From the NCBI GenBank assembly GCA_002269645.1, contig NIVC01000267.1:124001-188000 (forward strand): a stretch of DNA of 64,000 bases, in the 5' to 3' direction. The translations under genes were made by a program, and so were the position numbers. The notes below the pieces were generated by a model, which saw only the letters and a list, made by a program, of their open reading frames with translations, made no database searches and was not told the origin of the DNA. Each line of letters opens with the position of its first letter. Position 1 is the stretch's first letter. Of this stretch, positions 18,839 through 24,800 are shown piece after piece. This DNA comes from Macrostomum lignano (taxonomy: Eukaryota).

Positions 18839-21800
18839 ATGATGAGCGCGGCAGCCAAACCGCCGGCGGCCTCCGCAATGCTGCAAGCGGACAGCAGCGC
18901 GGATGCTGAGGCTTCGTTGCCACCAGCCGAAGTCGGCCAGCCGGACAGTCAGGAGCAGCGCAAGCTCGCGGACTATTATGTCCGCAGCATCCTCCGGCCC
19001 AGCCGAGCCGCCGTGCAGGACGCCGACGATGAGGCTGACGGAGACGACGATGATGAAGAGGCGATGGACGATGATGAGGCCGGAGAAGCTGCGGCCGGAA
19101 GAGAGGCGGAAGAAGCCTGCGATCAGCCGCTCACTTTGAAAATCGCCTCGGCCGGCCAGGAGGAGGACGAGGACGAGGCAGATTATTTCGGCAGCGCCGC
19201 TGGCCTGTCTGCGGGAGATGCCGACGACACCGACGTTCGAGAGGAGGTCGAAGCCGACGCAGCCGCCGCCGCTGCCGTTGCTGCGGCCTCCGACGATGCC
19301 GAAGGCGATCTCGACGGGGACGACACGGACGACTTCGAAGGCGCCACCGGCAGTCGGGCGAAGCGCGCCAGAATCGAAGACATTGTGAGCAGCGTTCGAC
19401 GCCGACAGAGCAAGCGGAAGCAGAGCTCGCCGCAGCCGCTGTTGGGGCCGCACCAGCTGCTTCAGTCGGCCGAGATGCGCTCCGAGATCCAGAAGGTGAA
19501 GGAGCGGCTGACGCAGATGCAGGCGGACTATTCCAGGCTCCTGCTGGCCTCCTGCGGCCAGGCGGGCAGCCCCGCGCCGGAGTCGGATGGGGAGAGCGGC
19601 GCTAGCGGAGTCCACAGCGGCGGCGGCGGCGGCGGCGGCAGCGGCAACATCAACAGCAGCAGCAGCGGTACGGAGGCCGTGGCGGCGGCCTCTCTGCTGA
19701 GTGACTCGCTTCTAAACGACACCGCGTCGAGCTGCGAGACATCGGCGAAAATTTCAAGGCCGCCGCAGCCCCGGCAGCAGCCGCAGCAACCACAGCAGCA
19801 GCCACAGCAGCAGCAGCCGTCGACGCAGCTTCAACCGGCTCACCAGCAGAAGCCGCAGCAGCCGCAGGTGTCGCAGCCGTCACGCGGCCCGCAGCTGCCG
19901 CCGCCGCCTCCGCCGACCCAGCAGGCGGGCCTGGCGCCCTTCCTGACCGAGGCGCAGATCCGCAGTCTGGCCGATTCACTCAAGAAGCAGGTGAGCGAGG
20001 ATGTCAGCAAGATGGTCGATTCGTTAATGGCGAAAATTCGCGAAGGCATGAAGGCTCAGCTGCGTCTGGCAGCGGCCCGGCTGCAGGAGCAGCAATTTCA
20101 GCAGCTGCAACAACATCAGCAGCAGCAGCAGCAGCAGCGAGGGCTGGGTCTCTATGGCCTCTCAATGCCGCACGTCTCGCAGCTGTTTGAAGAGGCCGCC
20201 GCCGCCCGCTTTCCAAAACTGCCGCCGCATCCGCATCAGCATCCGCACCAGCATCCGCCTCCGCATCCGCTCTACTCGCTGCCGGAGTTCGGGCGCCGCC
20301 TCATCGAGGAGCACTGGCGCGGTGCGCTGCCTCCGCAGTTCGCCTGCGCGCCTCCGCCGCCACCGCCGCCGCCGCCACCGCCGCCACCGCCACCGCCGCC
20401 GCAGGCTCCGCAGCTGCCGCATCCGTCATCATTCTACTCAGCCGCTGCTGCTGGCCTCTTCCAGAAGAAGGAGCAGCCACCGCAGCAACAGCCGCAGGCG
20501 CCTCAGCAGCAGCACTCATCGATGAACCACCTGCTGTCCAGCTTCCAGCAGAGCGGGGAGCAGTGCGAGGCCCTGCCTCTGGTGGTGAACACCCCCAAGA
20601 AGAAGCGAACTAAGGTGAGCCGGGGCCGTTCATTATTGTTTTTTCGTCCAGGGTTTCTCCTGCCCCACCTCATTTCTCCTGGCGCAGACAAAGGAAACTG
20701 AGTTGAGCTGAGGCAGCCGGCCAAGGTACAGCGGTTCGGGAAAGTTTTCCCACGCTGGCTAAGGAGGCGCAAGTGGAGGGGCCGCATTCCCAGGCAAAAG
20801 AATCTTCTATTTAATTACGGGTGCAGGCTTCATGCGTTATTCATTCGCGCGGTGTGCGGGGCCGCTGATGCGCTGCATCTGTTATGAAAGAGGCTGGGCG
20901 CATGTCTTGACACTGCGAGAGAGAGAGAGAGAGGACACTTGAGAGAATCTCCCTGCTTCCTTTTATTCTTTTGCGTTTTCTCGACAGCAACGGACCGGAT
21001 TTCTGGCTTTGTAGCAGAAGCAACAGTTTTTGATGGCTGGCTGAAGGGGAAACTTGGAGAAAAATTTCTTCTTCATCAACCAAGTGCCAGAGCCTTCTTT
21101 TGTCTCCCCCTCTCTCTCTTTCTCTGAATTAGAAGTGAAAGCAGAAATGGCAAGAGAGAAGAGATGAGGTACGCGGGGAACAATAAGCCATTGGAGGGAG
21201 TTTTCTTGTCTCGTCTTTAAAAAAGGAGAAATTTCCTGAGAAGTATGAATTAACACCCAGCTTCTAACTGATTGACACTTTGGCCCGAAAGTGTCAGGTG
21301 GGAATGTCTATGGCCTAACTCCATGGTCTCTCCTCCTGACCGGACAATCGCAGGTGACGGACACCCGCCTGTCGCCAAGGACCTCTCGCCACCAGCAGTT
21401 GTCCAGCGCTGATGAGCCGGAGTTGGGCTTCTGCCAGACAGGGCTGACGGGATCGCATCAGGACCACTTGGCCATGCAGCATCAACAGGACTCCCTGGCC
21501 TCGTCTCCTCGAGGCCAGAACAACAACAACAACAACAACAACAACAACAACAATAACAACAGCGGAGCCTCATCCCCAGCCTCCTTCGGCGGCGGCAACG
21601 GCGGTGGCATGGAATCTGCTGACATGGTGCTGAGTTCGACATCCGCCGGAGGACCATTCGAGTGTCTGGCGCAGGTATTCTTTTCGAAAAAATTTTTTCG
21701 CAGGCGCTGTTTTGAATATGAGATGCGCCGTTTCAAGAATGAGATGCGCCGTTTCAAGAATGAGATGCGCCGTTTCAAGAATGAGATGCGCTGTTTCAAG

Positions 21801-24800
21801 AATGAGATGCGCCGTTTCAAGAATGAGATGCGCTGTTTCAAGAATGAGATGCGCTGTTTCAAGAATGAGATGCGCTGTTTCAAGAATGAGATGCGCCGTT
21901 TCAAGAATGAGATGCGCCGTTTCGAATTTGGCATGCGCTATTTTTGTTTCTTTTCTAAACAAATTCCTTCAAGACTGGAAGATGCATCAGCCCCATTCGC
22001 TTCCATCTGTGCCCCCTTCTCCTAGGAGACACAGGCAATCCAACCCAGCAACCCAAGCAAGAAAATTAGCCGCGCACTCCTTGATGACATTTCTCGGCTC
22101 TGCCCATCTCTTACGCGCAGGCCGCAGGAATTCCCACTTCGAGACTCTCCTGAATCTAAAATTGATGGGGCATCGAACAGCTCGAGTCTTCTCCCCCCCC
22201 CACCCGCCCCCATGAATATCTGATTCCAGCGGCTGGTCTCCAGGAATCCTGTGCCAGAATTCTTCGAAGAAATTGCTTGGATTGGGTTTTAAACTGCTCG
22301 ACCGCCGGGCTCCCCTGGGGATGCGTGGGGAGCAGCAAGTCATCGAACTCGACACCTCAGTAGTGGCCCGCCTGCTCCTTCGAGAAACCTGAGAGGCCCA
22401 TAAAGAATTCTACGACAGCTCCGAAATGCTGTTCACTTTGCTATCGCGAGGCCCGTCTCTATGTATGGGAGGCCATAGGAGTTTTAGAAGGGCTGGAAAT
22501 GCCCAGCTGTACAGTTCAAAGTCAATGGCCCGCGCTCCAAGTGGGACAGCGAAAGACAAAGAAAATGACAGAACTGGCACTTCAGTTCTAGCGGAAGTCG
22601 GCGGCTGCTGCAGGCTGCCTGCTCGTCAGAGGGTGCGGGAACGGCGGTCGGGCAAAGAAAAACCGGGGCCCTCATTTTGCTTTCAAAAAGCTGCTCCATA
22701 ATTTGTGTTTCTTTAGCCTTTGCCCGGAAGAAGGAAACAGAAGGAAACTGGGGGGAACAATGAAGAAAGCTGACTGAAGGCCAGAAAATGCGTTTTTGGG
22801 TTCGTGACGGGGCAGAAAAGAAGAGGCGCGACAGGAAAAAGTCGAGAGCACCCGCTTTCTGCTTCTTGTCTGCCTGAGTTCTTTTGTGTCAATCTCACAC
22901 TGTCTGCTTATTTACCTACCGATCTACATGTACTCTACCAACCAACCTACCTACCACCTACCTACCTACCTACCTACCTACCTACCTACCTACCTACCTA
23001 CCTACCTACCTACCTACCTACCTACCTACCTACCTACCTACCTACCTACCCATCTATCTCTATCTATCTATCTATCTATCTATCTATCTATCTATCTATC
23101 TATCTATCTATCTATCTATCTATCTATCTATCTATCTATCTATCTATCTATCTATCTATCTATCTATCTATCTATCTATCTATCTATCTATCTATCTATC
23201 TATCTATCTATCTATCTATCTATCTATCTATCTATCTATCTATCTATCTATCTATCTATCTATCTATCTATCTATCTATCTATCTATCTATCTATCTATC
23301 TATCTATCTATCTATCTATCTATCTATCTATCTATCTATCTATCTATCTATCTATCTATCTATCTATCTATCTATCTATCTATCTATCTATCTATCTATC
23401 TATCTATCTATCTGTCTATCTATCTATCTATCTATCTATCTATCTCGACAGTACAACAGGCGGCCAAGTCCCGGGTCACAGAGTCTTGGGTCTCCAGGGC
23501 ACCTCCCAGCCCAGCCGTTCAACCCGCCAGCTTCTGGTTGTTAATCTCTGACATTCCAATCCTTGTTCCAGTCGGCCTGACATCACTGTTTACACTGCAT
23601 GGGCCACCGGAGTCCCCCACCAGCTGGGCCCAGCTTCGGGTGCCCCAAGTCACTTCTCCCAGATTCAGCTTCCTCCGAAAATTCCTTTTCTTCCTCCCCG
23701 CAACTCCGCCAGGCGCGGATGTAAACAGAGGCATCAACGGGTCTGTAACCAACTTCTCTACTATAACCAACACAAAATGCATTACCCTCTTAGCTAGTTT
23801 CCACTGGCTAATATAGTTTTGTTTACCTGGGCATCTCTGTGTCTCCTATTACCGTATTAGCAGCTAATTGCGGCTTTGTCTCGATGGGGGAGTTGGGCCG
23901 GGCGGGCAACGAAACACCTGTGGAGTCGCAGGTTCCGAGCAAAGCGGAACCCGTATTCGAAATGATTCCTTAACCAATTCTCAATCGAATATGCGCGCAG
24001 ACCACGACGCTGACTCCGATCCACCTGCGCAAGGCCAAGCTGCTGTTCTTCTACAACCGCTACCCCAGCTCCGCGGTGCTCAAGGCCTACTTCCCGGACG
24101 TGAAGTTCAACAAGAACAACACGGCACAACTGGTGAAGTGGTTCTCCAATTTTCGGTGAGCTTTTAAATCTCATTTATTAAAAATTCAGTTTTTTTAGTG
24201 TTCCTCCGATATCGAATCAATCTAAAGCACTCAGACTGAGTCTTCATCTCAATCGCATCAGAAAGCCTCTTTCAGCAGTGCTCAGCTTGGCTCTTCTCCC
24301 GCACGTCTCAATTGGAAAGCGCTGATTGAATCTCTTTCTCTCTCTTCCATCTTTGTCTTTCGCATTTCTGCAACCGGGCGCTGAGAAGACAAATCCCAAG
24401 CAGAGAGCGTCTGACTGCTCCGTCTCCCCATTGTCTGTCAAAGAGGTTTCTGAGTAAGTGAGCGAGCGAAGCCTGAGTGAATTGCGACTCTCAGTGCGCT
24501 GCTCCGCTGAGCTTTTTAATATTATTGTTCCGTGACTGCTCTGCTAGCAAAAGATGGCAAGACTGCGCTGGAGAGGCTGGGTGGGAAAAGGAGCGGGGCG
24601 CGCAGAACCTCAGCGTCTAAAATCAGAGATAACTGCCGGCTGCATTTGCTCCGTTATTCACTTATTCACCAATCTCTCTAAAATCTCTTTCTGTTTCTCC
24701 TGTTCTGCGATAGCCTTGTTTTCTCCACTCACCTCGGATAGGCTGCTTAAGCCTGTGTGTGCGTTCCGCCTCTGCAATCCCATTGTGACGGCTGGCACTC

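Follow-up and report, generated by a model that had tools for sequence, protein, structure and literature searches.

The minor intron of prospero is among just two such introns retained in every insect and vertebrate analysed (PMC3291851). Whether it also survives in a free-living flatworm, and which spliceosome would remove it there, is the question raised by a 64,000-nucleotide (nt) stretch of DNA from Macrostomum lignano (contig NIVC01000267.1, positions 124,001 to 188,000 of the forward strand). This whole stretch was analysed and is referred to as the window. Its + strand carries a prospero/PROX homologue with five exons (A-E) at ~18.8-28.1 kb, and the intron between exons B and C (21675-24000, + strand, 2326 nt) is of the GT-AG type and lies in phase 0. 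Judged by its splice signals and position, this intron is orthologous to the minor (U12-type) intron of bilaterian prospero/PROX1, an ancient intron that the flatworm has in its GT-AG subtype. We consider descent from an ancestral U12 intron essentially certain, and the signals make it rather likely that removal today still depends, at least in part, on the minor spliceosome.

Splice signals and exon junction

The 5' splice site GTATTCTTT (21675-21683) agrees with the U12 consensus RTATCCTTT at 8 of 9 positions; the sole mismatch is a T for C at +5, as judged by comparison with the consensus. The U12 branch motif TTCCTTAAC (23966-23974) is an exact 9/9 match to the branch-site consensus, with the predicted branch A at 23973. 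It is followed by a pyrimidine-poor spacer (23975-23998) and by the AG of the 3' splice site (23999-24000), 27 nt from the branch A. The donor and the branch motif had both been described in an earlier note made from the sequence alone, and their letters and coordinates were verified.

TTCCTTAAC has a single copy in the window, both strands included, where 0.5 are expected, and the chance of finding it on the correct strand within 40 nt of a given acceptor is roughly 1e-4. The donor consensus with at most one mismatch has 15 occurrences on both strands of the window (128 kb) against ~30 expected, and the chance of such a match at a given GT is about 1e-3. For both U12 motifs flanking the intron, we estimate a joint chance of ~1e-7.

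U12 introns are further recognised by having no distinct polypyrimidine tract, and none is found here, as the earlier note had also remarked. Among the acceptors of the gene, this one has the weakest pyrimidine tract. Its pyrimidine fraction at -25 to -4 is 0.50, the lowest of the four acceptors (0.64, 0.82 and 0.77 at the others), and its longest pyrimidine run, 6 nt, is the branch motif itself, compared with 8-11 nt at the other three.

The junction at 21674/24001 is set by the reading frame. The branch motif contains a TAA (23971-23973) that stops the frame of exon C; this frame opens only at 23974, and from there to the conserved start of the exon (TLTP) the AG at 23999-24000 is the only one. 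Between 21560 and 22025 there are just two phase-0 GTs, one being that at 21675 and the other, at 21627 (atg|GTGCTG), a poor candidate. With one usable phase-0 GT and one usable AG the junction of exons B and C is forced, and it reads CLAQ|TTTLTPIHL in phase 0, exactly as first proposed. The resulting spliced protein is 63-73% identical to many protostome prospero proteins, and the alignment spans the B-C junction without an abnormal gap. Exon C is the first portion of the homeo-prospero domain (Pfam HPD, E = 1.4e-25), its residue 3 corresponds to position 1 of the Pfam profile, and the intron lies two codons before this domain.

Two other readings of the splice sites were tried and rejected. 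For a twintron a second pair of sites is lacking: over the 350 nt that follow the donor no further GT is phase-compatible, and from the in-frame stop at 23971-23973 to position 24000 the AG of the 3' splice site stands alone. An AT-AC intron would need an ATATCC-like donor near exon B and a phase-compatible AC acceptor with a branch motif, and neither is present.

Orthologous introns in other animals

Genomic DNA was fetched around prospero homologues of other animals, and the intron located 7 codons before HLRKAKL (8 in the vertebrate) was read. It lies in phase 0 in every species read. The insect junction was taken from an ant; the Dendroctonus locus comprises the last two exons only and does not cover the junction. 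AT-AC introns of the U12 type are found in vertebrate PROX1 (SGSA|ATATCCTTTAC at the 5' end, tTTCCTTAACtaatttcatcctac|ATG at the 3' end, branch TTCCTTAAC at 15 nt from the 3' splice site), in the ant Ooceraea (GIQPT|ATATCCTTTAC, tTTCCTTAACcacggtgaac|TCG, branch TTCCTTAAC at 11 nt), in Lottia (GCQS|ATATCCTTTAT, taTCTTAACtcctaaatac|ACA, branch TCTTAAC at 11 nt) and in Lamellibrachia (GIGL|ATATCCTTTCT, aaCCTTGACagtacccac|ACC, branch CCTTGAC at 10 nt). The Octopus intron, whose donor lies outside the locus, is also U12-type and has an AC 3' end (tTTCCTTAACtgtcactac|ACT, branch TTCCTTAAC at 10 nt). The GT-AG subtype is found in Capitella (EGHPI|GTATCCTTTTC, gaCCTTAACccgtgtgctcag|ACCACGACC, branch CCTTAAC at 13 nt) and in Bugula (LPGQ|GTATCCTTTAC, tTTCCTTAACttatgaatag|AAT, branch TTCCTTAAC at 11 nt). 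The animals with a U12 intron at the orthologous position thus comprise one vertebrate, one ant, two molluscs, two annelids and one bryozoan. The earlier note had placed AT-AC introns of this type at the equivalent point of vertebrate PROX1 and of Drosophila prospero; such an intron can be read in the vertebrate locus and, for insects, in the ant, in agreement with the literature (PMC3291851).

The flatworm intron shares with the AT-AC introns of vertebrates, insects and molluscs the gene family and the phase-0 site 7-8 codons before HLRKAKL. The branch motif TTCCTTAAC is identical in the vertebrate, ant and Octopus introns and in the flatworm, and all of these lack a pyrimidine tract. It is unlike them in its GT-AG termini, in the T at +5 and the AG that precedes the donor, and in the 27 nt between branch and 3' splice site, which is 10-15 nt in the others. 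At the same site, Capitella teleta and Bugula neritina share with the flatworm the GT-AG subtype and the (C)CTTAAC branch motif, and Capitella also shares the start of the following exon, ACCACGAC (TTTLTP).

AT-AC is by parsimony the ancestral state, because it is present in a deuterostome, an ecdysozoan and several spiralians. Switching between U12 subtypes is known (PMC3584512), and on the sequences read here GT-AG appears to have arisen in three spiralian branches: in Capitella (the annelid Lamellibrachia keeps AT-AC), in Bugula and in the flatworm. These comparative data support the proposal, made in the earlier note, that an ancestral minor intron either survived here after a switch from AT-AC to GT-AG or is being converted to the U2 type.

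A comparison of the intron across flatworms, which had been suggested in the same place, points to such a conversion elsewhere in the phylum. At the same position and in the same phase, Echinococcus granulosus (RILK|GTAGGTTGA, cacataaattaag|GGT) and paralogue 2 of Cichlidogyrus casuarinus (MSM|GTAAGT, tttctag| at the 3' end) have U2-type introns with GTAGGT or GTAAGT donors, and Cichlidogyrus paralogue 1 has a U2-like 3' end (ttgattgcagcaacagcag|ACG). No U12 branch motif is present in any of the three. The intron described here retains both U12 signals, whereas the neodermatan introns have no trace of either, and one of them (Cichlidogyrus paralogue 2) is just 35 nt long. In Cichlidogyrus paralogue 1 (locus 7060-7080) tandem acceptors (ttgcag/caacag/cagcag) precede TSTLTPIHL, and the exact 3' site, and hence the match to the ancestral position, is ambiguous from the DNA alone.

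The public gene models of prospero are broken at the U12 intron in Capitella, Lottia, Lamellibrachia, Octopus and Bugula. A model of 153-192 amino acids begins at or near the exon that follows the intron, and the N-terminal part is annotated as a separate gene (fetched loci L002, 5754-8036 and 10001-20012; L003, 1-2171 and 10001-20161; L007, 4664-6832 and 10001-35984; L008; L009). These split models likely arise since gene predictors mishandle AT-AC and U12 splice sites.

Removal of the intron by the minor or the major spliceosome

Pairing with the small nuclear RNAs (snRNAs) was estimated as duplex energies. The snRNA boxes were human-type and paired in unconstrained registers, a caveat on every energy given here; their use is justified solely because planarian snRNAs are reported to conserve these recognition motifs (PMC6312358). 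Estimated in this way, the donor GTATTCTTT gives -5.9 kcal/mol with U11, -7.7 with U6atac and -8.5 with U1. The first two values lie inside the ranges of the U12-type orthologues (-4.9 to -10.4 for U11 and -6.4 to -11.0 for U6atac). In the branch region the duplex with U12 reaches -8.2 kcal/mol, compared with -3.3 for U2. The T at +5 permits a G.U wobble with both U11 and U6atac and does not improve the pairing with U1.

If the minor spliceosome still acts on the intron, the U11/U12 di-snRNP (the paired small nuclear ribonucleoproteins) would bind both the donor GUAUUCUUU and the branch site UUCCUUAAC at once, and the U at +5 would form its wobble pair with U11 and subsequently with U6atac. 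Branching would take place at about A23973, and the exons would be joined at the sole AG, 27 nt downstream. Removal in this way would probably be slow or error-prone, because 27 nt is far from the published optimum of 11-13 nt (PMC3584512), and the major spliceosome may already remove the intron from part of the transcripts.

U12 dependence is favoured because the branch 9-mer, the C at +6 and the TTT at +7 to +9 are of no use to U1 or U2. It is favoured also because the T at +5 keeps the wobble pairs while gaining nothing for U1, because no pyrimidine tract has been built up, and because minor snRNAs are documented in neodermatan and triclad flatworms, namely in Schistosoma (PMC2770079) and Schmidtea (PMC6312358). 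Since the converted flatworm lineages kept no trace of either motif, the perfect branch 9-mer and the T at +7 to +9 argue for continuing constraint.

Several points weigh against U12 dependence. The intron has three derived features, which suggest a drift toward ordinary splicing. One is the T at +5, where the donor has lost one of its two core C residues; +5 is a C in the U12-type orthologues, the Octopus donor lying outside its locus. Another is the A at -2 and G at -1, contributed by the terminal CAG of exon B. The CAG|GTA context forms six contiguous pairs with U1, and the resulting -8.5 kcal/mol is as strong as at the U2-type donors of the gene (-6.9 to -12.5), whereas the donors of the genuine U12 orthologues reach just -1.5 to -3.4. 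The description of this site as a poor U2 donor, given in the earlier note, was therefore overstated. The third is the spacing of 27 nt between the branch A and the 3' splice site, which is twice the 10-15 nt of the seven U12-type orthologues, exceeds the usual 10-20 nt (optimum 11-13), and had rightly been called longer than typical. Capitella and Bugula, of the same subtype, differ from the flatworm in all three respects: their GTATCCTTT donors are perfect, position -1 is a C or an A and the U1 duplexes are -1.5 and -3.4 kcal/mol, and the branch distances are 13 and 11 nt.

Beyond these features, a protein homologue search with the spliced protein returned no same-species or near-identical protein or transcript. 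The 64-kb window holds no snRNA, nor any other family, in Rfam at gathering thresholds, and a degenerate protein-pattern scan of metagenome contigs gave 0 matches. A literature search revealed no paper joining Macrostomum with U12 or the minor spliceosome. The literature likewise yielded no paper joining "Platyhelminthes" with the minor-spliceosome terms used, and the supplements consulted of a pan-eukaryotic survey list no flatworm.

The last 10 nt of the flatworm intron (atgcgcgcag) are similar to the 3' end of the Capitella intron (gtgtgctcag; Capitella locus 9970-9982), and the exon start ACCACGAC is common to both. The extra ~14 nt between branch site and AG, caattctcaatcga, with caat twice, look like an insertion, and this would account for the 27-nt spacing. 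A hairpin that shortens the spacer was considered and rejected, as the best fold reaches only -0.9 kcal/mol.

With an A at -2 and G at -1 that give six U1 pairs, and with a TTAAC that conforms to yUnAy, the branch consensus of U2, at a normal U2 distance of 27 nt, the intron can be called minor-like. This class (Olthof et al. 2024) has been proposed as a transitional state between minor and major introns (PMC11347168), and CAG|GTATTCTTT, with its U1 duplex of -8.5 kcal/mol and its 27 nt, has the hallmarks of a G at -1 and a long branch distance. The class was defined by position-weight-matrix scores on annotated genomes, flatworms not included, and the sequence of the flatworm intron matches it in a qualitative sense, without such scores. 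Human minor-like introns of this kind are often unresponsive to inhibition of the minor spliceosome (PMC11347168), which also speaks against U12 dependence.

Such a conversion may already be complete or nearly so, with an intron of U12 descent that is now removed by the major spliceosome and whose U12-like motifs are recent relics or have been co-opted. U1 would pair with CAG|GUA, and U2 would use UUAAC as a branch 27 nt from the AG, a distance typical for U2 and atypical for U12 (PMC3584512). Point mutations suffice to convert GT-AG introns of the U12 type (PMC3584512), the strength of the U1 duplex and the behaviour of human minor-like introns agree with this explanation, and U2-type introns stand at the same position in Echinococcus and Cichlidogyrus. 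Examined as a U2 intron, it has a CAGGUA that pairs with U1 and a TTAAC at a suitable distance (18-40 nt for U2), but no other acceptor of the gene has so weak a pyrimidine tract, +4 to +6 are mismatched and the U2 branch duplex is weak. Moreover, the perfect 9-nt branch, the C at +6 and the TTT at +7 to +9 are worthless to U1 and U2 and were erased in the converted lineages, and the T at +5 gives U1 no better pairing. We consider a conversion of this kind unlikely, although it has to be taken seriously. That both spliceosomes compete for the one GT and AG, as a "single-site twintron", is decidedly unlikely. It would agree with a donor that pairs comparably with U1, U11 and U6atac, with a branch motif that fits either consensus, and with the description of the minor-like class as a mechanistic intermediate (PMC11347168). 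In such an arrangement U12 might sometimes use the in-frame AT at 23984-23985 (+ strand), 12 nt past the branch A, as a 3' site that adds RICAQ to the protein; the choice of 3' site by U12 is driven by distance and prone to error (PMC3584512), and non-canonical U12 termini exist (PMC3584512, PMC10639083). RICAQ would, however, lengthen the linker between FEC and TLTP to 10 residues, against 5-7 in mRNA-derived homologues and 5 with the AG junction. The flatworm intron sits in the same gene, and at the position of the outer intron, as the prospero twintron of Drosophila, and competition between two spliceosomes is conceivable in comparison with it. The nested U2 intron is restricted to insects (PMC3291851, PMC3564746), and the flatworm has no nested second pair of in-phase U2 sites, so that the insect arrangement is not present.

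The in-frame AT and the five residues had been pointed out in the earlier note, correctly as to the sequence; its function as an alternative 3' site is speculation. Neither an AG nor an AC occurs 10-15 nt from the branch A, and a U12 spliceosome that chooses by distance would therefore mostly yield frameshifts. A wider form of the same idea is that the intron is a living intermediate between U12 and U2, with one GT-AG pair served by both spliceosomes and the choice between them tuning the level or isoform of Prospero, perhaps including the distance-selected AT site that adds RICAQ, and with the conversion finished in the parasitic flatworms. This we regard as quite unlikely. The suggestion that a minor intron rate-limits a neural-fate factor is pure speculation, supported by analogy alone. 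Finally, the U12-like strings might be a chance resemblance in an ordinary U2 intron, or the mRNA might use other sites. The one mismatch in the donor leaves some room for this, but the joint chance of ~1e-7, the single usable phase-0 GT and single AG, a protein alignment without an abnormal gap and a position identical to that of the U12 introns of seven other animals bring this highly improbable explanation close to being refuted. U12 dependence of at least part of the removal is thus the reading that we prefer.

The prospero/PROX1 minor intron now extends to a basal, free-living lineage of flatworms. Given its deep conservation, a U12-type intron was to be expected at this site in a further phylum. 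What is new is modest and consists of the copy in the Macrostomum lineage, the GT-AG subtype with repeated switching among spiralians, and the intermediate character of the intron compared with the converted introns of the parasites. Set beside the introns of Echinococcus and Cichlidogyrus, it gives a single site at which one phylum ranges from U12-like to fully U2-type, and the intron at the U12-like end carries features that have been proposed as transitional, namely the G at -1, the weakening of +5 and the longer branch spacing. In Macrostomum lignano or a relative that is accessible to RNA interference, it could be tested directly which spliceosome removes such an intermediate intron.

Structure of the prospero homologue

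All coding exons lie on the + strand. Exon A (18839-20614) starts at the first in-frame ATG (MMSAAAKPP...), ends in ...NTPKKKRTK and is followed by a GTGAGC donor at 20615. Its junction with exon B, KKKRTK|VTDTR, agrees with two aligned prospero homologues. Exon B (21354-21674) ends in ...GGPFECLAQ, and its GPFEC was aligned to the [YF]DG motif of prospero homologues. Exon C (24001-24155) encodes TTTLTPIHL...FSNF and ends with the CG of an Arg codon, after which a phase-2 donor, GTGAGC, is found at 24156. Exon D (27438-27582) completes this codon, ends in ...NNQIE and has a GTAAAT donor at 27583. The other three donors of the gene are thus GTGAGC, GTGAGC and GTAAAT. Exon E (27886-28071 including the stop, coding 27886-28068) reads VPSHFRN...NWMERLSDG and also matches Pfam HPD (E = 1.1e-20). 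In its C-terminal part, the homeo-prospero domain most resembles that of the monogenean Cichlidogyrus.

Repeats and neighbouring elements

A 21-nt tandem repeat, ATGAGATGCGCCGTTTCAAGA, begins 30 nt past the donor and occupies 21704-21938 of the intron (+ strand), with ~10-11 copies of 92-97% identity. It is confined to the intron within the window. The frame of exon B stays open through the repeat to 22022, reading (EMRRFKN)n, so that a transcript retaining the intron would gain 116 codons ahead of a stop. The perfect palindrome CGAAAAAATTTTTTCG (16 nt, 21685-21700, 11 nt past the donor) was rejected as a candidate structure, since its -9.9 kcal/mol is no better than that of shuffled sequences (z = -0.22). 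Further into the intron there is a microsatellite of ~500 bp (from 22940 or 22958 to 23445, + strand), (CTAC)n followed by (CTAT)n. Similar simple repeats are very frequent in the window, for instance at 14.4-15.1, 25.0-25.7, 33 and 36.5-37.2 kb.

Downstream of prospero lies a FERM-domain gene (30108-33635, + strand; FERM_N 30725-30982, FERM_C 33288-33635). It is followed by an intact open reading frame (ORF) of a retrotransposon without long terminal repeats (38676-41066, + strand, 797 amino acids, Pfam RVT_1), whose named relatives are Macrostomum lignano proteins only, with up to 89-90% identity. These matches by themselves place the window in Macrostomum or a close relative (Platyhelminthes, Macrostomorpha). 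A second intact ORF (49272-50234, + strand, 321 amino acids) encodes a DDE_3 transposase of the Tc1/mariner-like kind. This ORF is flanked by exons of an ADAM-type metalloprotease/disintegrin gene, whose Reprolysin and Disintegrin domains were located at 53207-53512 and 53974-54498.

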